The notes: generated by a model not told the origin, from the sequence alone. 64,000 bases of DNA from Rebecca billardiae RCC1528 (GCA_965240325.2 OZ251227.1:930001-994000), one strand, 5' to 3'; counted from the first letter of the stretch, positions 21,609 through 47,857 are shown. Translations and numbers: made by a program.

Positions 21609-21877
21609 CGCTCACAACGATGCCGTCGCAGCACCGTCCCTGCAAGTGCAAGACGAAGCTGACGAGGCCAACACGGCGGACGGGAAGTCCTCGTCGCACG
21701 TGCGGGGCGCGTCAGTGGGAACAGGGACGATGGCGTCGACAGCCCTATCATGTCCGGTAGCGGCAGGTACCCCTCCGGTTCCGGACGAGCGGCGGCGGCG
21801 GCGGCGCAGTGGCGTGCCCACACGGCGCACCGGTCGACAAGGGTGCTCGTTCAACCCGACGGCGTTGTGCGGGCGCG

Positions 21878-22597
21878 ATGCACCTCGTGCAAGCGCTGCG
21901 CCTCACAAGGCTCGCGAGGCTCCCAGAGCTTCGGTCCGTCGCTCTGGTCCCGATCCGCGCACTGTCCACCACCCCGAAAGAGAAGAAGGTGAAGGCAACC
22001 GGCAAGGCCAATGCGTGGACCGTGTTCCTGCAGGATGAGCTGAAGAAGGCCACCGGCACCGGCGCGACCCACCAGGAGCGCATGCGGGAATCCGCTAAGC
22101 GGTACAAGGCTCTCGACCCCGCGCACATCGAGGGCCTTCGCCTGAAGGCATCCGACATGAACGCCAAGAACGGGCTCTTGGACGAGCCACCGAAGAAGAA
22201 GGCGCCGATGAATGCGTATACGCTCTTTGTGAAGGACGAGATCCCGGCCGTCGCGAAGGCTTTCCCGGAGATGACAAACACCGAGCGCTTCTCGGAGGTC
22301 GCGCGGCGGTACAAGGCGCTCGATAGCGCCGCCCTGGCTGCCCTCAAGGAGCGCGCGCACGCGGACAAGCAGGCGTTTGCGGCCAGCGCACCGCCCAAGT
22401 CGCCCAAGTCGCCCGCGAAGCACAACTCGTGGACGCTCTTCTGCAAGAAGGAGTCAGAGCGCCTCGGCGACGACTTTCGCATCACGAGGGACACCATGCA
22501 GACGCTGAGCAAAACGTACGCCAGCCTGTCTGATGCAGACAAGGCGGCGCTCAAGTCGGAGGCCGTGTCGCTGAATAACGAGCGGGCGGGCAGCTAG
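21878..22597 (+). CDS. Three-HMG-box protein with mitochondrial-type presequence (TFAM/Abf2-like candidate)
   Basis: Arg/Leu-rich N-terminus ending RALST; three HMG-like repeats (KANAWTVF..YKAL, KAPMNAYTLF..YKAL, AKHNSWTLF..YASLS). Confidence 0.8.
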   Translation: MHLVQALRLTRLARLPELRSVALVPIRALSTTPKEKKVKATGKANAWTVFLQDELKKATGTGATHQERMRESAKRYKALDPAHIEGLRLKASDMNAKNGLLDEPPKKKAPMNAYTLFVKDEIPAVAKAFPEMTNTERFSEVARRYKALDSAALAALKERAHADKQAFAASAPPKSPKSPAKHNSWTLFCKKESERLGDDFRITRDTMQTLSKTYASLSDADKAALKSEAVSLNNERAGS

Positions 22598-26635: not shown

Positions 26636-27649
26636 TCACCCCCCGGGCGCCAGGCCGTTCGGAGCCGACGGCCCGTCGGAGCGCCCCGAGACCAGGTCCG
26701 TCCACCCAGGGTTCAGAACCACTGCATCGAGCTGGCGCAGGCTGGCTGGTGCGAGACGCAGCACATCCTCCAGGTAGGTCGCCCTCCGGGCGAACGGGTT
26801 CCCCTCGAGGTAGAGCGTCTGCAGAGAGGCCATGCTCCCCACCGGCTTGGCGGCTTCCACCGCTTCGAGCGCGTTGTCGTTGAGCCACAGGTCCTCCAGG
26901 ACAGGCAGGTGCGCAAGGCTTGGCACGGCGCTGATCTTGTTGCCGGAGACGTCGAGCACCTTGAGGGCGAGGAGTGTGGGCGGCAGGCTGTCGAGCGAGG
27001 TGAGACCATTGTGGGCCACGTACAGCTCGCGCAGCCGCGCGAGCGAGGCGAGCCCGTCCAGCGAAACCAGCCTGTTGCTTGACAGCCCCAGGATCTCCAG
27101 AGACACCAGCCGCTCGATGCCGGAGGCAGACGCGAGCTTGTTTCGGCCCAGGTGAAGCTCGCGGAGGTTGGCAAGGTGGCCGATCTTCTCGATCTCGCGG
27201 ATGCGATTCGAGCCGAGCTCGAGCGTTTGGAGCTGCGTGAGACTCTCCAGGCCCTCGATCCGCTCGAGCTTGTTCTGCGGCGCGTAAAGCTTCTCCAAAT
27301 GCGCGAGGCCCTGCTCGCTCAGCGGCGCGAGCGAGCGGATGGAATTGTGCGAGATGTCCAGAGAGCGCAGGGCGCGCAGATGCTCGAGGCCACGCAGCTC
27401 GGCGATCTCGTTGTCGTAGAGCTCGAGCTCACGCAGCTTGTGCAGGTTGCCGAGCCCGCTGATCTCACGGATGGCATTTGAGCGCAGCACGAGCACCTCG
27501 AGCTCGCTCAGCGCGTCGAGGTTCTCGATCGCGGTGAGCCGATTCTGGGTGAGGTGCAACTCGATGAGCGTGGGCGGCAGCTCGTATCCAGCGCCGATCG
27601 CACCGTGCGGCTCACCGGTGAGGTCGAGTACGCGTCGTAGGTCGGCCAT
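26636..27649 (-). CDS. SDS22-type leucine-rich-repeat protein (PP1 regulatory subunit 7-like)
   Basis: About 11 LRRs of 22 aa (LELGSNRIREIE, LHLGRNKL, LWLNDN, LYLEGNP) plus LRRcap (LRQLDA). Confidence 0.85.
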   Translation of the reverse strand: MADLRRVLDLTGEPHGAIGAGYELPPTLIELHLTQNRLTAIENLDALSELEVLVLRSNAIREISGLGNLHKLRELELYDNEIAELRGLEHLRALRSLDISHNSIRSLAPLSEQGLAHLEKLYAPQNKLERIEGLESLTQLQTLELGSNRIREIEKIGHLANLRELHLGRNKLASASGIERLVSLEILGLSSNRLVSLDGLASLARLRELYVAHNGLTSLDSLPPTLLALKVLDVSGNKISAVPSLAHLPVLEDLWLNDNALEAVEAAKPVGSMASLQTLYLEGNPFARRATYLEDVLRLAPASLRQLDAVVLNPGWTDLVSGRSDGPSAPNGLAPGG

Positions 27650-27882
27650 GACACCCACGGCTGCCCTCCGCCGCAGCCACCTTGTCCCGGGTCCTCGGCG
27701 CGCTCGACGACCGCTCGGCGCTCGCGTGCTTGGCGGCGTGCCTGTGTAGCCAGCCACCTGCCGGACGCTGCAGCGTCCGGCCACCGACTCTGCACCGGCC
27801 ACCTTGGGACGGGGCACCCTTCGGGGGCCACCTTGACGCTGCAACGTGCTCGTTGCACCGCGCGCGCGCTCTGGTCGGAGGT

Positions 27883-29010
27883 ATGCCCGCCGCGGGCTCG
27901 GTGAGCCTGCTGCTAGACGTGGTGCCCTTCATGGCCCCGAGCTGGTGCCGCTCGCTGCGGGCGCCTCCCGCTGCACGTGTGCGTCTCGGTGTCATGCCGA
28001 CCCCGCTGCATCGGTGGTCTCCGCCATGCCTCGCGTCCAGTGGGGCGGAGGTGTACATCAAGCGCGATGACATGAGCGGAGGTCCCGAGCTCGGTGGGAA
28101 CAAGGTCCGTAAGCTCGAGTTCCTCCTGGCCGCGGCCTTGTCGCAGGGGGCGGACTGTATAGTGACGATTGGCGGTGTGCAGAGCAATCACGCCCGAGCC
28201 ACAACGTCGGCGGCCAGGATGCTCGGACTAGACGCTCATCTAGTCCTGCGCGTGAGCGACCGCGCCGCCGACGCAGAGATTGGCTTCGATGGAAATCTCT
28301 TGTTCGAGCGGCTCGCGGGCGCAACGATCCGCACTGTGACTAAAAGCGAGTACGCGCGCCACGGCTCCGAGATGCTGACAGCCACGCTTGCCGAGCAGCT
28401 GCGTGCGGCGGGGCGGAGGCCATACGTGATTCCAGTCGGTGGGAGCAACGCGCTGGGGACGTGGGGCTACCTCAGCGCCGTGGAGGAGCTGCTTGGGCAG
28501 ATAGGCTCGAGCCCTCCCCCGGACCACATCGTCGTCGCATGCGGCTCCGGTGGCACGGCAGCGGGCATCGCGCTGGGTGTTTGGCTCGCAGGCCTCAAGC
28601 ACACGACGGTCCACGCCGTCGGCGTGTGCGACTCGCCTGGCTATTTCTACAAGCACATCGGAGAGCTCATTGAGGAGATGGGCGTTGATCTGAATGGGCG
28701 CGCTGTTGAGGACCTGCTTGTCATTCACCAAGGCAAAGGCATCGGCTACAGCATGTCAACTGAGGCAGAACTGCGGACGATCGCAGAGACTGCTGCTGCG
28801 ACGGGTGTCACGCTGGACGCCACGTACTCGGGCAAGGCCCTGCACGTTTTTGCCGAGCTCATGAGGGCGGAACCCGAGCGCTTTGCCAGCTCGCGCGTGC
28901 TCTTCTGGCACACGGGTGGAGCACTGGGGATGTATGACCGCACGTCATCCTTTCAGGCGCTCATGCCAGACCACCAGGTCACACCACTGCTTCCCCGCCA
29001 TTCTTCTTAG
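27883..29010 (+). CDS. D-cysteine desulfhydrase (PLP-dependent, ACC-deaminase family)
   Basis: IKRDD..GGNKVRKLEF, GGVQSNHAR, CGSGGTAAG; YSGK and HTGG give the Ser/Thr signature of D-cysteine desulfhydrase, not the Glu/Leu of ACC deaminase. Confidence 0.92.
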   Translation: MPAAGSVSLLLDVVPFMAPSWCRSLRAPPAARVRLGVMPTPLHRWSPPCLASSGAEVYIKRDDMSGGPELGGNKVRKLEFLLAAALSQGADCIVTIGGVQSNHARATTSAARMLGLDAHLVLRVSDRAADAEIGFDGNLLFERLAGATIRTVTKSEYARHGSEMLTATLAEQLRAAGRRPYVIPVGGSNALGTWGYLSAVEELLGQIGSSPPPDHIVVACGSGGTAAGIALGVWLAGLKHTTVHAVGVCDSPGYFYKHIGELIEEMGVDLNGRAVEDLLVIHQGKGIGYSMSTEAELRTIAETAAATGVTLDATYSGKALHVFAELMRAEPERFASSRVLFWHTGGALGMYDRTSSFQALMPDHQVTPLLPRHSS

Positions 29011-29199: not shown

Positions 29200-30234
29200 C
29201 TATGGTGGGCGAAGATACTGCCTGGTCCTTGGCCTCCGCTTCACCTTTGCATACGGGATCGTATTCGTCAAGTCGCGCGGCGGCTGCACGTCCGGGCAGC
29301 ACTGCAGTGAGGTGACCCGGCACTGATTGGTCTTCTTGCCGCCGCACTCCGCTAGCGCCGCGCAGTGCTCGATGCGATCACGCTCGGAGCACGAACCGAT
29401 CACGCACGCCATCTGCTGGCAGAAGATGAAGTGCACGAAGCGCGGCAGCGGGAACTTGACGGCACTGTCGTCGGCATACTTGTCGGCCGGCACGGCCGGC
29501 TTGTCCGGCTGGCGTTTGTCCACGCGCGTGTGGCGATCCTGCTTACCACCTGCCAGCTTGTTCTCTGTAAGCTGCAGCACCCAGGAGCTGAGCACGTCCT
29601 GTATGACGTACTCACCGCCCGTGTCGTCCCACCACTGCGTGCGCGAGAGGTAAACGTCTTCGATGAAGTACAGCCCACCCGGGTTGAGCATGTCGTTCCA
29701 GAACACATCAAACGTGTGCAACATGTCCGAATTGAAGTGGGAGCCATCGTCGATGATCACGTCGAACCCGCCGCGCGGGCCGGCGCGCTTCGCGGCGGCC
29801 TTCCACTGCATCAGCGTGCGGAATTCGCCCTGCGGACCAGTGAGCGTATTGATGCCCTCGAGCTCGCCCTTCTCCTTTGAGCGCTGCACGCAGTCGGCGT
29901 CGAGCTCCGCCTCCCACAACTCAGCGTGGGGAAGGTACTCGCGCCACACCTTGACGGATGCGCCTGGGCCGTAGTTCATGTTGCACCCGAGGCCGATCTC
30001 GAGCATGCGCATGCCGGGCACGCCGCGCAGAGGTGCCAGGAAGATGCCGTACATAGTCTCGTACGGGTGTGTCGTGAATTTATCGGACATGCGGCCGTAC
30101 TTGGCCTTGTGCGACAGGCCGAGCTCGCGCAGCTCGTACACCTGGCCATTGTACCCCAGCATGTGCGTCACATTGCGCGGGTCGACGAGACCATTCGCGT
30201 GCGCCGCCAACAGCGCGAACACTGCCGCCCGCAT
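29200..30234 (-). CDS. Class I SAM-dependent methyltransferase-like protein (MycE/8-demethyl-O-methyltransferase-like) with signal peptide
   Basis: DK..H.Y...Y, MLEIGLGC..YGPGAS..W, FDVIIDDGSH, LNPGGLYFIED. Confidence 0.8.
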   Translation of the reverse strand: MRAAVFALLAAHANGLVDPRNVTHMLGYNGQVYELRELGLSHKAKYGRMSDKFTTHPYETMYGIFLAPLRGVPGMRMLEIGLGCNMNYGPGASVKVWREYLPHAELWEAELDADCVQRSKEKGELEGINTLTGPQGEFRTLMQWKAAAKRAGPRGGFDVIIDDGSHFNSDMLHTFDVFWNDMLNPGGLYFIEDVYLSRTQWWDDTGGEYVIQDVLSSWVLQLTENKLAGGKQDRHTRVDKRQPDKPAVPADKYADDSAVKFPLPRFVHFIFCQQMACVIGSCSERDRIEHCAALAECGGKKTNQCRVTSLQCCPDVQPPRDLTNTIPYAKVKRRPRTRQYLRPP

Positions 30235-30413
30235 CGCTCGAACCGAGGGCGGCAAAGATCCGCGCGCCCCGCGGCGGTGCCACCCTTGCGCGCCGACCGC
30301 CGAGGCAAATTTGGCCGAGGCGCCGAACTGGGCAAGCAGGCGGGATTTCTGCGTCCGGTTCCGCTCATTGTCAGCCAGGGTCCGGTGCAGATTGACCTGT
30401 CGACGTCGGTGCG

Positions 30414-30674
30414 ATGGCGGCCTCGCCGCCACTGCCAGCGGTGCTGATCACTTCCAGCGGCCACGTGGTGGGTCGAGTGCCACCGAAGCCTCGGAACGAC
30501 GTCCCGCGGGTACCCATCGTTCTCGGAGTACTCACATTTGTCGGGATCGTTTGCCTCGCTCTGGCTATGCTCGGTACAAGCAGGCGATCGGAAGAGACAT
30601 CCGCACACGTCGTCGTCAATATCCCCGCGTCATCCTTGCAGGGCGGCCTCAACGCATCTGTCGACGGCAGATGA
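30414..30674 (+). CDS. Possible small single-TM protein
   Basis: VPIVLGVLTFVGIVCLALAML helix; divergent from the methyltransferase. Confidence 0.35.
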   Translation: MAASPPLPAVLITSSGHVVGRVPPKPRNDVPRVPIVLGVLTFVGIVCLALAMLGTSRRSEETSAHVVVNIPASSLQGGLNASVDGR

Positions 30675-32191
30675 CGCGTCTCGATCACACTGGTTTGCCG
30701 GGCGCAGGTGTGGCGCCAAAACGCGACTCGCGCTCCACACTTGTCTGCTCTGCACGTTTGCACGCGCGCGCGCGTGTGCACGCACGGCTGCGTGATGAGC
30801 CCAAGCCAAGATTGATCGCGTGAGAAAAACACCACTGGCGAGAAGGTACAAGCTCTGACAGCTGCGCACAGGGGCGTGCGATGAGCTTGGTGCAGTGAGG
30901 AACATTATGTCATGAGGCCGATTTGGAGGCGCATTGTGTCGAACACGCAATGCGTCGCTGAATGAACTCAGCAGAAGGGATGATTTCTGAGCACCTCGCC
31001 AGCCCGCTTCCCTGCGATCGTGGCCGCCGGCCCACGCGGCGGCATGGGATGTTGCGACTAGGCCGCGGTTGCACACTGCCCCTCCCGGTCGCGGTGTGGG
31101 GTGACTGGGTTTTACGGTTCACCGCTGCCGTGCCGTGTGCTCTCTGACCGCGATGCGTCGCACTCGCAGTGTGTCCACGGTGCTGCCTGCTGATGATCAT
31201 GATACGCAATCGTGACCGCCCCCTCCTGCGTACGCGCGCGCATCATATCGCCCACGCCCTGACAATGGCAGGTGCAGTGCTAGGCGGGTTACTCCATCCA
31301 GTCGCGCAGCTCGACGCTTTTCTCTGGTGATAAGTTGTGCGCTCTGTCATTGACGAGTGATACTTGTGATACGGACTATTACGGTCTGCCGGTGCTGCCA
31401 TCTGCCGTCGGACCTGCGCGCGTTGCCACCGCCGCGTCACCATTTTCAAACATGATCAGAGCGATTCCGACGACGACGCTGCGAGTCATCAGCAACTTCT
31501 CACGTTGCATGCGCAACATGCTGCGCGTCCTTTTCGCATCATCACTCATCACTCATCAGTCTCAGAGTCTGCTTGCAAGATCGGCCAGCACTAACTAGTC
31601 AGACGTCTGTCACTCTGTCACACTAGCCGTACTCACTCACTAGTCACTAGAGCTCTAGAGTCACGCCCGGTGAGGCGGTCCGCTCAGTCTGGTCCGCCGG
31701 CCTTATGGCTTATCGCAGACAGTAGTAACGTATTACTGCTTAGACGTACTGCATCAATCAGTAGCATCAAACGTGAAGAGGTAACTGGTCCTAAGTGATG
31801 CCGCGCGTGTAACTGTAAAGTGTAAGCGTGAGTTGCCACTGACCGGTCGCGACGCCGGCGTCGGCCTACTAGCTACTCTGCTATTGATTGCCAAATGGTG
31901 GACCGTGATGCAGTACAGTATAAGTTGACCTTGCAGTTGTAGGCTGGCTTCAAGAGTGCAGGTATTACTATGCCATCACTAGCTGACTGTACTACTACTA
32001 GCTTTCTGCTACTTCTACTACTACCACTGAGAATACTCAGAGAGTCAGAGTCAGGTTTGCAGCAGGAAAGACCACCGGGAAAAAATTCAAAAAAGGCGGA
32101 GCTGGAAATCTTGGTCCGCAAATCTCGTCATCGACAAAATAATCTGCCGTTGTGTGCGAATCGTCACGGCGTCGCGACCTTTCCCGGCTCG

Positions 32192-33439
32192 ATGGCGGCT
32201 CTCGTCCAGCTGCTCGGCCGATCGGCTCGCCGAGCCGCCCCCCTCCAGCGGGCACTGTCGGCGGGGGTCGGCAACCGGGTGCCACTCGTTGCCGTCATCG
32301 ACACTGACCACCCCGGAGACGTTGAGGGGCTCTCGGCATGGCTCGAGGATAATCCCACCGCGATCGTCAAATGTGTCATGGGCAAGACTGAGGGGAATGG
32401 CGGCGCGAATGACTTCACCCGCGCCTTTGCGGCGTCCAGAGTGAAGTCCTGCCTCGCGGGCCACAATCCCATCGATGGCGAGCGCAACACGGCCATCATC
32501 ATCTCCGGCGGCACAGAGGGTGTCATCACGCCGCACCTCCTCGTGTTTGCCATCGCGGAGCCGCCAGGTGCTGCGCTCGAGGCGCGCGCTGATGCGCAGC
32601 CCGACCCCGATGAGGCCCGGCTGAGCTTCGGGATCGCACGAACGGAGCCTGTACTGCCCGAGCAGATTGGCACCCTCGCGCAGGTCGAGGCCACGCGCAA
32701 GGCCGTGCTGAAGGCGTGCGAAGACGCGCGTGTGAACCCGAAAGGCGGCATCGCGCTTGCTCAGGTCAAGTGCCCGCTGCTCACCTCCGCCAAGCTGCAA
32801 GACGCGACGCTCCGCGGCGAGACCGTGCGCACATCCGACGCGCATGTGTCGATGGGCCTCACTCGCGCCGCGTCTGCGCTTGGAGTCGCCCTCGCGACGG
32901 GCGAGGTGACTTCTGTCGTCGAAGCTGACATCGGCTCGCACGAGGCGATGGCGGACAAGTTCTCCGCAGTCGCAAGCATCTCGGCGGGCGCCGAGGCGGA
33001 CTACGCGGAGGTCTTCGTGATCGGAAACGCCCCGGGAAGCTGGAGCACGCTGCGCGCCGCCCACACCGTCATGCAGGACCCGCTTGACTCGCGCGCTATC
33101 GTGCAGCTGCTCGAGACCGAGGGCCTCGACACGCGTGATGGCCAGCTCTGTCCGACCGCCCACGAGCGGCTCATCTGCGTCCTCGCCAAGGCGGACACGC
33201 CGCGCTTGGTGCGCGAGCGGCGAACCACGATGTGTGATGACGCCGACTTCCAGGCCACGCGCCATGCGCGCGCCAGCCTCGGTGGCGTTCTCGGGAGCGT
33301 CCTCGGAGATCCACGCCTCTTCATCTCCGGCGGCGCAGAGCACCAAGGGCCGCCGGGCGGAGGCCCCGTGTGTGTCATCTACAGCTCCCTGCTTGGCGAG
33401 GCCTACTGGAGCCATGTGCGCGAGGGCTACTTCCCGTAG
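32192..33439 (+). CDS. atzD: Cyanuric acid hydrolase/barbiturase-family ring-opening amidohydrolase (AtzD-like) with mitochondrial-type presequence
   Basis: GKTEGNG..NDFTR, SGGTEGV.TPH, QVKCPLLT, SMG..RAASALG, AS.SAG.E, VLAKAD, TRHAR, SGGAEHQGP.GGGPV. Confidence 0.93.
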   Translation: MAALVQLLGRSARRAAPLQRALSAGVGNRVPLVAVIDTDHPGDVEGLSAWLEDNPTAIVKCVMGKTEGNGGANDFTRAFAASRVKSCLAGHNPIDGERNTAIIISGGTEGVITPHLLVFAIAEPPGAALEARADAQPDPDEARLSFGIARTEPVLPEQIGTLAQVEATRKAVLKACEDARVNPKGGIALAQVKCPLLTSAKLQDATLRGETVRTSDAHVSMGLTRAASALGVALATGEVTSVVEADIGSHEAMADKFSAVASISAGAEADYAEVFVIGNAPGSWSTLRAAHTVMQDPLDSRAIVQLLETEGLDTRDGQLCPTAHERLICVLAKADTPRLVRERRTTMCDDADFQATRHARASLGGVLGSVLGDPRLFISGGAEHQGPPGGGPVCVIYSSLLGEAYWSHVREGYFP

Positions 33440-34285
33440 AAGTGGGCGCAGCTGCAGTCCGCCGTCCTTGAGATCCCGAAAGCCACCTGACACAGCTCGG
33501 CGCATCAGGCCCACGCCATCACGGCGATCACTGTGTAGTTCTACACATGAGTCGTGCGACACTGCCGGCCACCGGCTCCCGTGGCTCCGGCGTCGTCCGG
33601 CCGTGGCCCGGTCCCAGAGACCGGACTGGCCGCGGACCCAGTCCGTCAGCCAGAGCTTGTCAACAGCAGTGTGGTGAGTGCGCGCTCGGATACTTATCCT
33701 GAATTTCAGTTTGTCGCCATCGAAGTGGCGGTCGTCATCATCACATCAGCATGCCGCTGATCGGCCTGACGATGCGGCATGCAGCGGCATCATCATCTTA
33801 TTCATCGTCAGTGACTACAGTATTCAGTGATTGCGGCATTGATGTCGTCTGATATATATCATATCATATCATCAGCGGCCACGCAGACAGAGATCGAGTG
33901 TCAGAGATACGAGTAGACGAGCTGTATATAAGTGTAGTCGTGTGTCACTTATAGGCCACGGTGCTGTAGATAGCAGTTATAGAGATACTCATCTCGTCGC
34001 GCCTGAGACTGCCTGCTGATACTAGTTACTGCTGATGATAGCTATCACGTATAATATCGAGTATCATCGTCATGTGACATGTCACTCGTCACGTCAGTCG
34101 GAGTCAGGGGCGTTCCCCTCACTGGTCATATGCCACATAGCTACCGACAAATCGAGCCGCGTGTTCAATTATTGAAATAATGGATTTCCGCTCTAACTTC
34201 GTCAGTGACGGCGGACCGTAGCTTTATACATTATAATATTTTGATAACGCCAACGGCCCGCGCCAGTCCAGTCTTATAGCAGCAA

Positions 34286-36822: not shown

Positions 36823-39800
36823 TCATGGTCCTCTGCTGCCGCCAAACCCCGCTCGTTGCTTTGCAGAAGTGCCGCCGAATCCACCTGGTCCTGACCCGGC
36901 GGCCCCGGCACCACGTTGAGGCTGCGCCGCGCGCCCTCCTGCCGCGCTCACGTCGGCTCGGCCGGCGTCACTTCTGGTCTCGCGGCGGGGACTGGTCGCG
37001 GGGATGTCCGCTGCCGTGATCTCCGTCACGGTCAGCACATCGCCTTCCTCCTCCTCTGAGTCATTCTGCGCGGGGTTGGACACCCTGGTCGTCCGGATCG
37101 TCGGCTTTGCAAAGGACGAGTTGGCGTCTCGTGCACGCCCGCCTCGCGCGGGCGAGCGGCAGTGAATCATCACGTCCTCGTCGTACTCCGAGACGCCGTC
37201 CGGCAGCGCGACGCCCGCGTCCGATGAGGCCTCGACGGTGACGTGCGTCATGCTCGACGAGCGCGCGACGTGCAGCAGCCTCTGGGCAAACTTGTTCGCG
37301 TTCGCCACGGCAAAGCCCACATCCGAGATGTTCGAGAGCTTCGCGAGCTTCTCCTGCGGGCACGGGCGCCGCGCGGCCAGGGCAGGGAAGGCAGGGGTGG
37401 CCGGCGGGCATGCTCGTGCGTGCGTGAGCACCGGCGTCGCCGATGCCGCCTGCAGATCCGCGCGCCGCGTGCCGGGCGCGCGCGCGTGTGTCGCGCGCGC
37501 TCACCTCCGCCTTCTGCTGCAAGTCCGCCTTCACCTCTGGGTAGAAGGGCAGCAGCGAGTCGAGGTCCTTCTTGGAGAAGACGAAGAGCGAGCAGAACGT
37601 CTCCGCCGTCACCGTCGCCTCGCGCGCACGGTCTGGCAGGAAGATCGAGAGCTCGCCGAAGTGGCTCCTGCGCGCGGAAGTCGGGCGCGAGCGCACGGCG
37701 CGCGCGCAGGAGAGCGTGCGTGAGCAGCGGCGGCGCGCGCTCAGCGCCGACCCTAGCGCTCCGCATCCGGGGCGGCACGCCCACTCCGCCAGCGCCGCCG
37801 CCCGGCGCGCACCCTGGGCCGTATTTCTCGAAGAGCTTCGGCTCGTCCTCGTCGGGCACGTTCAGCTCCGCTTTGAGCTCGCCGCTCTGCACCATGTACA
37901 TCTCCAGCCCCACCTGCGCGCACGCCGGGAGGCGGCCGGCACGAGAGCGCGCCGATGCGCGTTGGGCGGCGAGTGAGGCACGCGCGCGCGCGAGCGCGAG
38001 CGCAGGCGCAAGTGCGGCTGGGATCGCGCGCGGCGCGCGGCGGCGCGCACGTCGCCCTCCGTGTAGATCACGTCGAGCGGCGCGGCGAACATCGGCTTGA
38101 GCCTGTTGCACACCGAGACGATGAACTGTGCGTCCCGCTCCTTGAGGAACTCGACCGAGTCGATGATGCGCTTGTTGAGCGATAGCATGATCTCCGTGCG
38201 CAGCGGGGGCGGGAGCTCGCTGAGGATCTGCTGCTCGACGTCGATCTCGCCCGACTCGTTGAGGTACGTGTTGTAGTACGCCACGATCTGCTTCTGCAGC
38301 ACCTTGGGGTACTGCCGCTCCCACAGGTACTCCTTGACGTTGGCCATGCGCTCGCGCAGCCGCGAGCCGGTCGGGTCGAGGTTGTCCACCAGGTCGGTCA
38401 TGCCGCCGATCACGACGCCGAAGATGGACGCGCCGATGAGCATCACGATGATGGCCGCCCAGTACTCCACCTGGTTGCGCGCGACGATGTCGCCGTACCC
38501 GATCGTGCTCATCGTCGTCAGCGCCCAGTAGATCGAGAGGAAGTACTTGTGCATCTTGGAGAGGTCCTCGACGCCCGCCGCCAGCATCCAGTTGTCCTCC
38601 TCGACCGAGACGACCGCGCAGTAGTGCCACATGCAGCCCGCGAGGTGCACCATCAGCATCAGGTAGATGATCAGCTTGGTCAGCTCGAGCGTGGACGGGT
38701 TGATCCAGCCCTCCTCCTGCATCTTGCCCAGGATCTTGCTCAGCTTGAGCAGCCGCGCCAGCTTGAGCAGCCGCACGAGCCGCAGCATGCGCAGCAGCGA
38801 GACGATCCGAGGGCTCACGTCCACGCCGCGCACGCTGAAGTCGCCGCCGTCCTCCGACTCGAGCAGGAAGTCGAGCGGGAGCGAGGAGAGCACGTCGACG
38901 ACGAACCACGAGCGCGAGTACGTCTGCGCGATCTTGGTCGGCGAGGTGACGAGCACGCCCGCGTCGTCGAAGTAGGCGGTGCGGAAGTTGACGAGCACGT
39001 CGAACATGAACACGCAGTCGATGCACAGCTCGAAGATCCGCACGCTGCCCTCGGCCGCGACCACCATGAACACGCGGTACGGCACGACGAGCGAGGAGTA
39101 GCAGATGAGGACCGAGAGGAAGACGTCCCAGCACAGCTTGAACACCTCCTGCGGGTGGATCAGCAGCATGTCGCGGCACTCGATCAGCTGGCGGCGGTGC
39201 AGCGCCTTCTGGTCGAGCACGAGCACAGAGCGCTTGCGCACGAGGTCGGGCCGGCCGCTCCTCGACTGGTCGGTCAGACGGTCGGACAGCCGGTCGGCGA
39301 CGAAGTCGCGCGAGGCCGAGGACAGGCGCGAGCAGTCCGACACCTGCGACGACGGCGCACCCCTCCGCTCCCCCGAGCCGTTGGAGAGGGCGGAGGGCGA
39401 GACCTCCGAGCTGGTCGAGCCGTGCGAGCGCGCGTTGGCCGAATTGGAGCTGGTCGGATCGGCCGGCAAGAGGCGGCCGTCGCTGCCGGCGAGGCTGTTC
39501 TTGCGCGAGCTGCTCGAGGAGCCGCCACTCGTGCCGCTCGCCGCGGCCGGGCCCGCCCTGCCAACCTGCTCCGCCGCGGGCTCGGCTTGGCTCTCGGCGG
39601 CTTGCCCGCCGTGCGCAGGCGCGCCCGCCGCCGCCTCGCCCGCGCTGTCGCCGAGCGACGCGGCGTAGTCCTCGTCGTCCGGCATGGTGAGAGGCGTCGG
39701 CGGCTGGATGGAGAGCTCGAGCCCGGCGACGGGCTTGGACGCCGCCGGCACGCCTTCGTCGTCGTCGTCCATCCCCACGTCGATCGGCGGCGGCGGCTCG

Positions 39801-42800
39801 ATCGGCGCGAGCGGCGCGGGGCGCGCGTCCGCGCCGCCGGCCGTGGCATCGCTGCCCCCGCTGGGGCCACCGCTGCACTGGCTGCTGTGTGCGTCCGCGC
39901 TCGCGGACGAACCCGCTGCCGTGCTCCCCGCCGCGCGCGTGTCGTCCGCGCTGCCGCCCCCGCCCGCCTCGAGCGGGACCACCTGCGACGGCTTGGCCGC
40001 TCGGCCCATCGCCCCCTCGGAGGAGTTGGTGCGCCTGCTGCCCCTCAACCCGCGGTCGACCGTCTGCCGCATCTTGAGGGGCGAGTCCGGTGAGCCGATC
40101 TCGATCGGAGCGGCCTCCTCGCTGCTCGCGCGGCTCTTGCGCGAGCAGCGCGGGAGGCGCAGCGGCGCGCGCGGAGGGCTGCCTCCGCGCTCGGCCATCA
40201 CCTGCCCGAAGCCTCGAGCGCGTCTGCCGGCGGAGTCCTCGCCATTCCGAGCGGCAGCGCCATCGTCGGCACCGGCGCCGCCGGCGCCGCCGCCGCTGCC
40301 GCCGCTCGCGGCCATGCCAAACCCCCTGGGCGCGCCTGAGAACTTTCGCCTGAGCGGGCTCGCCAGCGGCGAGGCGGCGTGCTCGACCCCCAGGGTCGAA
40401 GGGCTCCGCTCGCGCGTCGCGGCCGTGAGCGCGACTGCCGTGCGCGTGCGCTGCCGCACCGAGCGCTTCAGCACGTCGCTGGCGGTCGGCCCGTACGAGC
40501 GCACCTCGCTCGGTCCGGTGCCGCGCTTGCCGGGCGAGGGCAGCGGGCTGGGGATGAAGCTCCCGCCGCTGACCGCGCCCGGCACGAGCAGGTGCGTGCC
40601 CGCGCCGGCCGCGCTGCCTCCCGGCTCGGCCGCGTCGGCCGCCGCGGCCGCGACCACGCGCGCGCGCTCGGTCGCCTCCTCCTTGATCGCCTGCTCCGCC
40701 TCCTTGAGCGCCTCGTACTGCAGCGTGTGGTACTTGGACTCGTGGCGCTTGGAGCGGGCGAGCGAGAGCAGGTCCTGCCGCATCCGCGGGAACGAGACGA
40801 GCACCTTCTCCATCCCCTCGCGGCTCAGCCACAGCATGTCGCAGTGGCCGCTCGCGACGCACGTCGCAGGCTGGCGGATGTTCATCAGCAGCGAGACCTC
40901 GCCAAAGTGGTCGCCCGCGCCGAGCCGCGCGGCGACCTCGTGCCCGGCGAAGCTGCCCTCCGGCGCGGCGGGGTCGACCTCCTGCGCCTCCCAGTCGTCC
41001 TCCTTGCTCACCTCCGCCACCACGTTCCCCGTCACGATCCAGTACATGTCCATCGAGACGACGCCCTCGAAGCAGATCACGTCGTTGGCCTCGGCCGGGA
41101 AGGGCTGCAGCACCGTGCCCAGCAGCCCGACGAACGCGCGCTTCTTGTTGGCCATGTACGGCAGCGAGCCGAGCACCTTCTTGTGCGAGTGGTACGCCAT
41201 CTTGATCCGCAGCGCGTTCGACACCTCAGACAGGATGCGCTCCTCGTCGAACACCGACTTGCGCTCGTAGTAGTACTCGTAGAAGGAGCGCACGCGCTGC
41301 TGCACGACGCGGTCGATCTTGCGCGAGTGCATGAAGTCGCCGACGGTGGACATCTTCTCGCGGTACAGCTTGAGGCGCACGTCGAAGGACTGGGAGAGCG
41401 AGGTCATCGTGCCGATGATGTAGCCGAACACGACGATCCCGAGCAGCTCCGCCGACATCACGACGAGCACCTCCTCGAGCCGGTGCAGCGACGGCTTCAC
41501 CTCGCCGTAGCCAACCGTCGTCATCGTCGTGAACGCCCAGTACATCGCGAGCTCCCACTGCCGCGCCTTGTCCTGCTCGGCGAAGCCCATCAGCTCGACC
41601 CAGGACAGGCTGTCCTCGTCGTCGTTGTTCGTCGCGCCGAACATGAGCAGGCACGCCATGTAGTGCGCGAAGAGCAGCACGCCGAGGATGAGCTTGATGA
41701 AGCGGATGAGGGACGGGTTGATCACGTCCTTCTCCTCGAGCTGCTTCACAAAGTGGTTCAGCTTCACCAGCCGCATCAGCTTGACGAGGCGGAAGAGGCG
41801 CAGGGTGCGCAGCAGCTTGGTGCTGCGCAGCCACGTCGAGTCCGAGCTCGACACGCTGCCCAGCGACAGCGACACCAGCCGGTCGAACGGCACCGTCGAG
41901 ACCAGGTCGAGCGCAAACCACGACGACAGGTATCGGTACGCGATGATGCGCTGCGAGTACGTCACGACCATCGTCGCCGCGGCGGCCGCCTCCTCGGGGG
42001 TGAGCTCCTCCGGCTCGACGTAGACAAAGATGCCGGTGCGGAAGTTGGTCACAATGTCGCACAGGAAGAACGCGTCCATCACCCAGTCCAGGATCGCCCA
42101 GCCGCCCATGGCTGGCTCGAGGAAGGCTATCCTGTACGGGATCAGCAGCGTCGAGTACAGGATCAGCACGGCGAGCACCACGTCCCATGCCGTCTTGAAG
42201 CGGCCCTGCGGGTGCAGCATGAGCGGCGGCACGTGCCGCGACGCGCTGCTCTCGTGCACGTGGTCGAAGTCCTCGACCGGGAACGAGCCGTAGGTGCTCA
42301 TGAAGCTGTCGATCTTGCGCGGCGCGGGCTGATGGTGCTCGGCGCTCGACGGTGCGCCCGCCCGCAAGAACGAGCTGCCTTTGACCAGCGTGGTGCCCGT
42401 GGCTGAGCCGTGGCGCGACGGTCGATCGATCATGATGCCCCCACCAGCATCCCACCGGCGCTGCAGGAGCGTCCGCTGCTTGCGCTGCCCACTGCTGTCG
42501 GTCGAGGTCTTTGACAACGACGCCAACCGTATGCAGCTGTTGGACACCTGCTTGCCCGCCTTGGCGAGCGCGGTGGGCAAAGCGGAGACGATGTTCCGCG
42601 AGCTGCTGCGCGAGGTCGATCGGCTCAGCGACGCGGCGCCACGCCCCCCGGCGCCCGGACCCTCCGCGTCGCCCGGACGCCTGTTCTCCGCATCGGGCGC
42701 AGCGCTGATCCCAAAGTCACCGTCGACTGGCGGCAGCTCTGCTGTCTCGTCCTCGCCGCTGAAGTTGACGCGCCCACGACCAGGTGGAGAGCGTGTGACC

Positions 42801-42877
42801 GAACTGGCCAGCCCGCGCGCGCTCTCAGCGCGCGCAGCCGCCTGCGGGGGCCCTTCCAAGGTTGCGTCCTCCTCCAT
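36823..42877 (-). CDS. Cyclic-nucleotide-binding K+ channel with two tandem 6TM-pore-CNBD modules; introns 37914-38050, 37668-37812 and 37354-37504
   Basis: Two S4 Arg/Lys arrays, pores TMTTVGYG and TMSTIGYG, two CNBDs (HFGEVSL, HFGELSI); the splices restore the reading frame. Confidence 0.9.
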
Positions 42878-43090
42878 GGAGCCAACGACACCCCCCGTTA
42901 GCTCATCCCCATGCCGGGCCGCCCTGCTTGTGTTGTGCAGCAGCGTCCCGGCAACTGCCCCGGACTCCGTTTTCCGGACTTCTCGTCACGCAAATGAAAA
43001 TCAACCGGAAATTAAGTGATGCTGCTGAATCCTGCTGATCGGGCTGAGCCTGATGCTGACGACAGCAGCAGTATTAACGACAAGTTTGCG

Positions 43091-45703: not shown

Positions 45704-46708
45704 CTATGAGTACTCATACACCGACTCCCAGGGCTTCCGTGTAAGTGTCGCCCACTCCCCTGCTTTCTGCGGCTTGCGCAGCGTAAGAACCAGCTTGTCA
45801 CGCCTGCGCTTGACCGATGCCGACGTGATGCGCTTCAAGAGCAGTAGCTTGAGCGTGTGGCAGCTTTCGCCGTCCACGCTCAGGATGTTGAGCTCCACCT
45901 CGTTGTCCGAGTGCTCATGGAGCGTAACGCACGTTTCGGGCAGTGCAGCGGCGCCATCAAAGGGAACAAAGACTTTCACGCATGTCTCCTCGTCGCAGAA
46001 GGAGTAGTTTGCGATGAGCGTGCACTGGCGCTGCGCATCGTAGGCGGGAGCCCCAGTGACTCCGTCGCGGTGCGCGTAGTAGTAGGAGTACTTCCCCGCC
46101 TTTGAGAGGCTCTTTGCCAGAGCGCTCTCCCCGTCCGCTCCGCTCGCAGCTGCTGGGGAGGCCGCTTGCCCGCTGTCCTTGTCGGCCTCGCCCGCAGGAG
46201 TCGAGCTCGACGTTTCATCTCGCGCGTTCCCAGGACGCACGGCTGGTGGTGGTGCCCAGGCGTCGACGGTCCCGTGACGCGCCACCTCTGCCGGTGCCGA
46301 GGCCACCTTTGCGTTCTCCGGAGCAGCGGCGATCACAACTGATCGCATCACTGTGATGATGAGGTGGCCGTCACGGAAGGTGGCCTCCACTGTGGACAGG
46401 TCAGCATCACGCAACTGAATGTGTTCGTCCACAAGGCTCGGATCCTCTGCGCCTCGCACGGCTACGACGTCGCCTTCGATGCGCACATCAAAGTCCTCTT
46501 TCCCAAGCCCGGGAAAGGCTCCCGACCACTGAAAGCGATCGCCGAGCTCGCGAAGGCGCATCTTGGGCGGCACACAGACACGCTTGTGGAAAGGGAAGTC
46601 TTGCTTCTGACAGTTTGCATCGCAGTAAAGCGCCTTCCGACACCTGCCACACCGCATGAAGCGAGGCCTCTCTGCAAAGCATGAAGCGCAGTGCGGCTTG
46701 GCGGCCAT
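45704..46708 (-). CDS. MYND zinc finger + HSP20/alpha-crystallin-like + CS(p23)-like domain protein
   Basis: CASC..CGRC...YC...CQ..D...HK..C; PGL.KED..V...G..V.V.G...ATFRDGHL.I; YSF.D....VKVFV...L.L.LRK...W..L. Confidence 0.8.
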   Translation of the reverse strand: MAAKPHCASCFAERPRFMRCGRCRKALYCDANCQKQDFPFHKRVCVPPKMRLRELGDRFQWSGAFPGLGKEDFDVRIEGDVVAVRGAEDPSLVDEHIQLRDADLSTVEATFRDGHLIITVMRSVVIAAAPENAKVASAPAEVARHGTVDAWAPPPAVRPGNARDETSSSTPAGEADKDSGQAASPAAASGADGESALAKSLSKAGKYSYYYAHRDGVTGAPAYDAQRQCTLIANYSFCDEETCVKVFVPFDGAAALPETCVTLHEHSDNEVELNILSVDGESCHTLKLLLLKRITSASVKRRRDKLVLTLRKPQKAGEWATLTRKPWESVYEYS

Positions 46709-47857
46709 CGTGTCTCGGCCAGGTCGTTCAGCCCCTCGCCCCCTGTTTGGTACTCTCCTCCGGACTGCGCCGCCATCGTTACTCGGCGGGCACTCGCGTG
46801 AAGCGAGTGCGATGGCGGAGAGTACCAGCCAGCCTCGCCCCCTCCGGCTCGGCCCTGGCTGGACAGTACGAGTGCGCCGCGCCACGTCCACGCCTCCCGT
46901 TCCGCGTGATCGGGCGTAGACAGTCGGCAGTCGGCCTTGGGCCGCGCGGAGTAGTGCGTGCGGCCGCGCGCCAAGCGCCCCATACTGGCACGCAACGGCC
47001 TCAACGAGCGCAGCCATCGGCCCAGGCCGTCGGCCGAGGGTCATTCCAAGCCCGCCGCGCCGGCACGCCCCCATGATGCGGCTTCTCCTGCGCGTAGGCG
47101 CCACACATGCGCGCTCCCAGGTTTGGGCCGGCATGCGCTCGGCGCACTGACCGCGCGCGCGAAAGGCACTTCTCATAGTATGCCGAGCGGCAAGCAGGCG
47201 GTCGAGCGGTCGCGCAGGCGGGCCTGGATGCATCGCCTCCCGCGCACGTCGCGCTCAGGCGCCTGCTCACTCCGCGCACGCCGCGTGCGCGCAGCTCGAG
47301 CACTCGCTGCCTCGCGACCGAGGCTTCAGATTCAGCTCACTGCGGCGAGGTGCGGGCGAGAGACGCAATCAGAGCAGCGTGGCGCGAGGGGAGAACCGAA
47401 GAAGCGCGTGTCGCCGGACGCGCCTCCCCCCGACGAACATGAGGCCACAATCATCAGCCCGGGTGCGCGCGTCTGTGACGGGCTGCGAGGGTGCGATGCC
47501 AGTCGCCGAGCGGCCGCGGTTCCAGATGTCCAGTGAGACGCGAGTCGCGAGCTCAGCTGCGCCCGCGCCTGTCGGGACCGGTGAGCAGCGGCGCGAGAGT
47601 GGATCCAACCTGGACCTCACTCCTCAGCTGAGCAGAATTTTATTGGCTCTTTTCGATGCGTGACAGCGTGACGAAAGCGCATTTCTCATCGATCATCTAT
47701 GAATCGAGACTCGAGAGCTCTAGCAGAGGCGGCCCGTTGCTGCTGTCAGAGTCTTGACGATGTGATCGATCCGAGACGATCGAGAGGGGCGCGGAGGCAA
47801 ATACTTTATTGGCACCTGCCAGGCGGTAGTGCGCCAATTTACGTTCTAAGGTCCGGC

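Follow-up and report, generated by a model that had tools for sequence, protein, structure and literature searches.

An intact gene for a predicted ring-opening amidohydrolase of the cyanuric-acid type in the haptophyte Rebecca billardiae, and its relatives in other algae

Background

Why should the nuclear genome of a haptophyte carry a gene for a protein resembling cyanuric acid hydrolase, an enzyme that has been called rare and restricted to bacteria and fungi (PMC6557486), and the recent spread of which is treated in the specialist literature as a response to man-made triazines? Such a gene lies in a stretch of 64,000 nucleotides from Rebecca billardiae RCC1528 (GCA_965240325.2, OZ251227.1:930001-994000; hereafter called the window, and all positions are counted from its first letter). 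In this study, we considered whether the gene is the alga's own, from where it came, where in the cell its product would act, and on which ring. The reading that we favour, to which we would give a probability of roughly 0.6, is that this is an intact nuclear gene of the haptophyte for a predicted Ser-Lys ring-opening amidohydrolase of the cyanuric-acid type, which would reside in the mitochondrion and feed nitrogen salvage.

Eukaryotic members of the family are known. Fungal cyanuric acid hydrolases (Dodge, Preiner and Wackett 2013, J Bacteriol 195:5233, as this work is cited in PMC4051656 and PMC12342508) belong to the same family and, so far as these citations go, offer a eukaryotic precedent for a working enzyme, although from a kingdom different from that of the alga. 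The preliminary description of this locus regarded the family as mainly bacterial with sporadic fungal members, which holds as far as it goes and is incomplete: a homologue from Micromonas sp. RCC299 was placed in Group I by Peat et al. 2013 (PMC3758960), and a protein of Pelagophyceae sp. CCMP2097 already bears the name "cyanuric acid hydrolase/Barbiturase" at NCBI. A literature search, which covered works other than Seffernick 2012, Dodge 2013 and Aukema 2020, found none in which an algal enzyme is described or tested.

Gene structure and position of the start codon

In the ORF listing of the window, the AtzD-type gene is contained in a plus-strand frame that is open over 31970-33439 (for the features, see Table 1). 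The start was set at 32192, the Met of MAALVQLLGRSARR, from which 415 codons lead to a stop at 33437-33439, because the in-frame stretch upstream of it is of low complexity and AT-richer, because GC3 drops there to 0.43 from 0.82 within the gene, and because this Met is aligned with the starts of the relatives; in the alignment it is invariant across a four-member subfamily consisting of the window protein and its three nearest relatives. The protein was colinear with its homologues over residues 33-398 without a break, and the gene therefore has no intron. The ORF listing and this alignment agree with the intronless ORF of 415 amino acids that had been claimed for the locus.

Table 1. Positions of the AtzD-type gene, its parts and neighbouring genes in the 64,000-nucleotide window
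Feature	Position	Strand	Evidence
AtzD/TrzD-family ring-opening amidohydrolase gene, complete, single exon, 415 aa	32192..33439	+	ORF, profiles, PDB matches, AF2, codon bias
Upstream in-frame stretch, ATG-initiated, judged non-coding (5' leader/promoter region)	31970..32191	+	GC3, low complexity, relatives' starts
N-terminal extension, residues 1-28, MAALVQLLGRSARRAAPLQRALSAGVGN, predicted mitochondrial presequence	32192..32275	+	Composition, hydrophobic moment, AF2
Toblerone-fold catalytic core, three pseudo-repeats, about residues 29-398	32276..33385	+	Column table against 79 homologues; PMC3758960, PMC4051656, PMC6557486
Variable insert after first repeat, about residues 120-144, AIAEPPGAALEARADAQPDPDEARL	32549..32623	+	Alignments; pLDDT down to about 84
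C-terminal tail, residues 398-415, SSLLGEAYWSHVREGYFP	33386..33436	+	Alignments; AF2 helix 402-410
HMG-box protein	21761-22594	+	
LRR protein	26639-27928	-	
PLP enzyme, ACC-deaminase/D-cysteine desulfhydrase family	27682-29010	+	
Unassigned protein with leader and methyltransferase-like motif	29203-30447	-	
Tandem ion channel with cyclic-nucleotide-binding domain (CNBD), 1707 codons	37865-42985	-	
MYND-finger protein	45704-47233	-	

Family, fold and active site

The Pfam profile PF09663 (Amido_AtzD_TrzD) matched the protein at 352.1 bits (cutoff, 25; E = 4.6e-105) over profile positions 2-357 of 358, and TIGR02714 matched it at 311.6 bits (cutoff, 153.1); membership of the predicted protein in the AtzD/TrzD family is confirmed, with scores far above chance. 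Among PDB sequences, cyanuric acid hydrolase of Moorella was the best match (E = 2e-73), TrzD and AtzD were also matched, and barbiturase was weaker (E = 1.3e-62). The AF2 model, which was built on a 60-sequence alignment, has a mean pLDDT of 90 and a pTM of 0.89 and takes the three-repeat Toblerone fold. This fold is held in common with AtzD of Pseudomonas sp. ADP (4bvq), TrzD (5t13) and the enzymes of Moorella thermoacetica (6bum/6bup) and Azorhizobium caulinodans (4nq3): Foldseek comparison of the model with 6bup, 4bvq, 5t13 and 4nq3 gave target-normalised TM values of 0.87-0.91 (E, about 1e-43 to 1e-39). Barbiturase of Rhodococcus erythropolis (Bar, 5hwe) likewise has both family and fold in common with the window protein (target-normalised TM, 0.87). 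The bacterial cyanuric acid hydrolases and the window protein are identical in the Ser-Lys dyads, the three Arg residues, the five specificity residues (see below) and the SGGAEHQGPxGGGP loop; however, overall identity to the characterised enzymes is only 39-41% in the structure alignment, and the window protein differs from them in its nuclear gene, a presequence of about 28 residues, an insert after the first repeat and an 18-residue tail.

In an 80-sequence alignment, the catalytic triples of the window protein were assigned as K65/S105/R77, K193/S264/R225 and K333/S379/R360. All the motifs that had been listed in the preliminary description were found, namely GKTEG (K65), DFTR within NDFTR (R77), SGGTEG (S105), VKCP (K193), SMGLTR (R225), SAG (S264), RHAR within ATRHAR (T356 and R360) and SGGAEHQGP (S379-G380-G381), together with a third Lys motif, LAKAD (K333), which was not in that list. 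The metal-loop motif SGGAEHQGPPGGGP is intact. So are the central Ser-Lys dyad (S264/K193; S233/K162 in AtzD) and R77 (Arg54 in AtzD), and this dyad and the first Arg are reported to be universally conserved in the family (PMC4051656).

Cyanuric acid hydrolases (EC 3.5.2.15) are split from barbiturase (EC 3.5.2.1) by five positions (Arg195, Thr321, Arg325, Gly345 and Gly346 in AtzD numbering), at which barbiturase has Asn, His, Lys, Val and Ser/Ala (Peat et al. 2013, PMC3758960); in addition, the Arg of the second repeat is reported to be Gln in barbiturases (Cho et al. 2014, PMC4051656). At the five positions the window protein has R225, T356, R360, G380 and G381 (R/T/R/G/G) instead of the barbiturase signature (Asn195, His321, Lys325, Val345, Ser/Ala346). 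A control row of the same alignment, a Propionibacteriaceae protein (L067), reads N/H/K/V/S, which is exactly the barbiturase signature, and the column mapping is thereby validated. When the catalytic and specificity positions were taken together, 12 of 12 agreed with the characterised cyanuric acid hydrolases. The comparison with L067 upholds the earlier argument from residues, by which cyanuric acid hydrolase had been preferred to barbiturase, and assignment of the residue set to the cyanuric-acid type is supported as far as the sequence reaches.

Genomic context

A family that is overwhelmingly bacterial, with matches of about 45% identity in Alphaproteobacteria, raises the suspicion of bacterial contamination, or of a gene passed very recently from bacteria to this alga alone. 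The surroundings of the gene speak against both. The flanking genes are eukaryotic (Table 1), and the neighbour ORFs listed there share a strong third-position GC bias; codon usage of the AtzD-type gene (RSCU) correlated with that of three neighbours at r = 0.89, as compared with 0.62 and 0.36 in the shifted frames. The neighbours and the common codon bias thus bear out the earlier claim that the AtzD-family enzyme is eukaryotic, its gene being nuclear. The presequence and the nearest relatives, which are described below, also argue against a foreign or newly arrived gene. Bacterial contamination is excluded for practical purposes, and we consider this explanation as a whole, recent transfer included, to be extremely improbable.

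Genes related to biuret, allophanate or urea were not found within the 64-kb window; this window-wide look at the genes is in agreement with the preliminary description, which had noted the absence of biuret and allophanate hydrolase genes next to the locus, and it sets the locus apart from the bacterial systems, in which the gene stands in an operon with genes for biuret and allophanate hydrolases. In the mineralisation pathway of cyanuric acid, the hydrolase is followed by BiuH or AtzEG/H and these by allophanate hydrolase. No tRNA and no Rfam family was found in the 64-kb window. A gene cluster conserved with Diacronema lutheri was considered and rejected: the PLP-dependent and methyltransferase-type genes that lie close to the AtzD-like gene of that species were unrelated to the window neighbours in pairwise BLASTP.

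Phylogenetic position of the gene

In a word-based protein search, the best matches were 45-52% identical, and a near-identical protein was not found. The named algal matches came from a dinoflagellate (Prorocentrum cordatum), a pelagophyte (Pelagophyceae sp. CCMP2097) and two haptophytes (Diacronema lutheri and Isochrysis galbana), and many unnamed metagenomic or run-assembly sequences were also matched; in bacterial species genomes, mostly of Alphaproteobacteria, the best matches were about 45% identical, and the best bacterial sequences reached 45-47%. A scan of JGI metagenomes with the window protein gave no close relatives, a scan with the subfamily alignment gave only matches of ~39-47% identity with no further tail-bearing copies among the returned loci, and a feature search of the ESM Atlas brought up no clusters other than those of bacterial cyanuric acid hydrolases. 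No poly(A) tail was found on the contigs of three relatives (L003, L166 and L167).

The tree was reconstructed with IQ-TREE under LG+C20 with PMSF, after a quick tree, from 80 rows and 398 columns; it is unrooted, and no fungal or Micromonas sequence was among those retrieved for it. The window protein and 35 other sequences were separated from 44 bacterial sequences by a branch with 100/100 support. Only five of these 36 sequences are named eukaryotes, the others being assigned by clade membership and their N-termini, and the named members belong to Haptophyta (Diacronema and Isochrysis), Pelagophyceae and Dinophyceae. The terminal branch of the window protein is long (0.89). In the AU test, a single clade of haptophyte type (the window protein, the Diacronema group and the Isochrysis group) was not rejected (p = 0.217), where it should be noted that the group was chosen after the tree had been seen.

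These results bear on the suspicion of contamination or recent transfer, since the nearest relatives of the window protein are algal (up to about 52-53% identity), the bacteria lie beyond the 100/100 branch, and specific indels and the tail are common to the window protein and that of Diacronema lutheri. They also bear on the proposal of a horizontally acquired, host-adapted enzyme. Understood as an import into this lineage, the proposal is not supported by a clade of 36 sequences at 100/100, the named members of which span three algal groups and nearly all complete members of which carry similar presequences; because of this clade and its presequences, we regard the gene as old and shared by several algal lineages rather than recently transferred into this alga. 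As judged from the tree and the N-termini, it appears to be an old, widely held algal gene that has long carried an import signal. The preliminary description had set its own view against a broad vertical distribution among eukaryotes, and the distribution observed comes close to one, the spread extending across several algal lineages only.

N-terminal extension and predicted targeting

Bacterial homologues start about 12 residues ahead of the HPGD motif. The extension of the window protein (residues 1-28) contains four Arg and neither Asp nor Glu, and its helical hydrophobic moment was the highest in the compared set; the AF2 model places low-confidence helices at residues 2-9 and 13-26. R20 and S23 do not vary among the four members of the subfamily, and R20-x-x-S23 is what we take to be a possible processing site of the R-3 type. 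Similar presequences were seen in the named members of the clade (Pelagophyceae sp. CCMP2097, P. cordatum, I. galbana and D. lutheri). When 28 complete members were counted (Met-initiated, with an extension of 8-70 residues), their extensions had 109 Arg/Lys against 2 Asp/Glu in 553 residues; clade-wide, they are short, Arg-rich and nearly free of acidic residues, and a hydrophobic core is absent. A composition rich in Arg/Lys and poor in acidic residues is typical of mitochondrial presequences, and haptophyte plastid proteins need the hydrophobic core of a signal peptide. From the composition, therefore, we infer mitochondrial import as the best reading. The composition of the 28 residues and the clade-wide pattern fit the mitochondrial-type presequence that had been claimed.

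The enzyme might instead be cytosolic, or be targeted to the plastid by a longer N-terminus that begins at the upstream ATG at 31970. The frame is indeed open from that ATG, and the peptide encoded upstream of 32192, which contains SFLLLLLLPLRIL, has a hydrophobic start resembling a signal peptide. However, the fall in GC3 described above lies over this stretch, the relatives begin at the Met equivalent to that at 32192, and the extensions of the clade fit the mitochondrial pattern and not the bipartite pattern of plastid proteins. A location other than the mitochondrion is thus considered very unlikely.

The tail-bearing subfamily

The C-terminal tail is absent in bacterial and most algal homologues and is nearly identical in D. 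lutheri and two unnamed relatives; the sequence in Diacronema is SCLLGDAFWRHVREGYFP. In the tree, the window protein grouped with the Diacronema protein (P0020) and these two relatives (P0026 and P0030) at 90/86, and the grouping is backed by rare characters, that is, the 18-residue tail, a similar insert after the first repeat (the sequence pattern of which is common to Diacronema-type relatives) and the R-x-x-S of the presequence. In the three relatives, the first Arg (R77), the Lys of the central dyad (K193, replaced by Gln), Thr321 and Arg325 (R360) are lost, and these proteins retain only 62-68% of the family-conserved columns, while the fold and tail are kept; the Diacronema protein scores 222 bits against the cutoff of 360 for NF052395, the NCBIfam equivalog of cyanuric acid amidohydrolase. 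Since the tail is almost perfectly conserved despite the degraded sites, it would serve a function apart from catalysis. Among the members of the subfamily that we found, the window protein alone is catalytically intact; it is at most 53% identical to the named algal homologues, and its active site is intact whereas those of the Diacronema type are degraded.

The question arises as to whether the window protein is itself a relaxed or non-catalytic relic, in a subfamily drifting to a binding or structural role, with the window copy silent or enzymatically dead. The loss of the otherwise universal central-dyad Lys and of two of the three Arg residues in P0020, P0026 and P0030 beside a conserved tail would be expected in this case, as would the long terminal branch and the fact that the window protein keeps 90% of the family-conserved columns, where the other members have a median of 98%. 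A search for RNA runs over 31600-34000 listed none. Taken with that branch, the degraded relatives may be read as hints of a role of the subfamily other than cyanuric acid hydrolysis. Nevertheless, the catalytic, specificity and metal-loop residues are all intact in the window protein. In the 60-sequence alignment, 98 columns show conservation of 90% or more across the 56 rows with which it was compared; the window protein has the consensus residue in 88 of these columns, and its ten mismatches are conservative. Its ORF is unbroken with a strong, host-like codon bias, and the AF2 model is confident. We therefore hold it unlikely that the protein is a relic.

Possible substrate and function

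If the protein is a working enzyme of the cyanuric-acid type, the following course can be proposed. Guided by a cleavable presequence at its N-terminus, the precursor would probably enter the mitochondrion, where the enzyme would hydrolyse a single ring amide bond in cyanuric acid, or in a closely similar symmetric tri-oxo ring, to give carboxybiuret, which would lose CO2 and become biuret; a biuret/triuret hydrolase, followed by hydrolysis of allophanate or urea, would then yield ammonium for re-assimilation. The substrate might be scavenged from seawater or might arise in the cell when guanine or urate is oxidised, so that either organellar nitrogen salvage or clearance of products of purine oxidation is a plausible role. 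A natural pool of cyanuric acid in seawater or algae was not documented in the literature that we found. Triuret and cyanuric acid can form chemically from uric acid, and also in guanine oxidation, and trtA is reported from some fungi and phytoplankton (PMC7948467); among the work cited in PMC12623156 is the formation, from a guanine lesion, of a carboxamidine that is a precursor of cyanuric acid; and cyanuric acid has been reported from secretions of Paramecium (PMC12342508).

With the family and fold unchanged, the physiological substrate could also be another cyclic amide, in which case the words "cyanuric acid" would be annotation transfer only. Candidates are a barbiturate formed when pyrimidines are broken down oxidatively, a triazine or pyrimidine trione that carries an N- or C-substituent, and a novel algal metabolite. 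The algal clade lies across a long, fully supported branch from all bacteria and its members are uncharacterised, and the score of the window protein for NF052395 is marginal (365.0 bits, which exceeds the cutoff of 360 by only 5 bits; other members of the algal clade score 373-385 bits). Within the family at large, some members of Group V have neither cyanuric acid nor barbiturate activity (PMC3758960), and a solved member, 5hy0, is titled orotic acid hydrolase. In addition, one member of the algal clade (P0032) is fused to a TauD-type Fe/2-oxoglutarate dioxygenase, which suggests that an oxidised precursor may be passed to the hydrolase in that organism. On the other hand, five positions set the cyanuric acid hydrolases apart from barbiturases, as well as from Groups IV and V, and at every one of them the window protein has the residue of the cyanuric-acid type, as do 32 of the clade's 35 further members; a three-fold symmetric site of Ser, Lys and Arg suits a three-fold symmetric substrate (PMC3758960, PMC6557486). 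A different substrate is accordingly the less probable case, albeit one to be taken seriously, and cyanuric acid or a ring much like it is the substrate that we would predict.

At present, then, the locus offers a well-supported annotation joined to a hypothesis, and the pathway is not demonstrated; what is new is that a known family gains a member for which a link to nitrogen recycling in algae is plausible. The fact that several major marine phytoplankton groups share an intact clade with presequences speaks for a natural substrate of long standing, and would point to an unrecognised step of nitrogen salvage or damage clearance in algal mitochondria. Going further, one may tentatively imagine, although we rather doubt it, an ancient mitochondrial route in marine algae with red plastids (haptophytes, pelagophytes and dinoflagellates) that would lead from cyanuric acid to ammonium with the participation of triuret/biuret hydrolase, urease and guanidine hydrolase, and the inputs of which may be nitrogen-rich compounds obtained by scavenging, or else the triazines and ureides that arise when guanine and urate are oxidised. 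If such a route existed, cyanuric acid would be a natural metabolite and nitrogen source of the ocean and not mainly an industrial pollutant, and the published view that confines cyanuric acid hydrolase to bacteria and fungi would be overturned. Aside from these considerations, the algal enzymes could widen the set of cyanuric acid hydrolases that are studied for water treatment.

Specificity control and divergent members of the algal AtzD clade

The homologue from Propionibacteriaceae bacterium G1746, which forms a long branch and has all five residues published as the signature of barbiturases (N, H, K, V and S), was used as the internal control for the specificity columns. In the Pavlovales-type relatives of the window protein (the Diacronema lutheri protein, P0026 and P0030), the Lys of the central Ser-Lys dyad was replaced by Gln, two of the three Arg were gone, and the GKTEGNG motif was absent; the fold-level match was retained, and a C-terminal tail, LLG[DE].[YF]W.HVREGYFP, was near-invariant. 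These three proteins are probably pseudo-enzymes, or enzymes with a new function. Note that, in Diacronema, an MFS transporter gene was located 184 bp upstream of the AtzD-like gene on the same strand.

In protein P0032, a TauD/AtsK-type Fe(II)/2-oxoglutarate dioxygenase domain was joined to a member of the AtzD clade with intact catalytic residues, and structure matches of the dioxygenase portion were limited to the generic TauD group. This fusion is a hint that the ring-opening enzyme is supplied by an oxidation step in some organism. The called N-terminal extensions of some other clade members (P0028/P0029, P0137 and P0006) comprised 110-180 residues without a family match; they could be leaders called in error, or genuine additional domains.

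Homologues of the window protein and neighbouring genes in the window
Feature	Location	Strand	Remarks
Diacronema lutheri relative	L001:10001-11248 (JAGTXO010000015.1)		
TauD/AtsK-AtzD fusion, P0032	L003:180-2285 (JGI 3300032726)		701 aa, single ORF
Propionibacteriaceae bacterium G1746 homologue	L067:3001-4104		bacterial
AtzD-clade proteins with long N-termini	P0028/P0029, P0137, P0006		542 aa, 556 aa, 476 aa
PLP-dependent enzyme, ACC deaminase/D-cysteine desulfhydrase family	window 27682-29010	+	TIGR01275, 304 bits, above cutoff
415-codon ORF	window 29203-30447	-	GC3 0.83, coding-type
Tandem channel with cyclic-nucleotide-binding domain	window 37865-42985	-	two Ion_trans matches

Neighbouring genes

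The 415-codon ORF and the AtzD-type gene are divergently transcribed, 1.7 kb apart. Searches of this ORF against Pfam and NCBIfam gave no match; its product has a leader-like hydrophobic stretch, a Cys-rich C-terminus and a LEIGLG...IIDDGSH motif similar to SAM-methyltransferase motifs. In the PLP-dependent enzyme, about 100 N-terminal residues precede the domain. The ORF of this enzyme and an LRR-protein ORF on the opposite strand (26639-27928) overlap at the end of the latter. The channel ORF was uninterrupted over 1707 codons, with a GC3 of 0.94.
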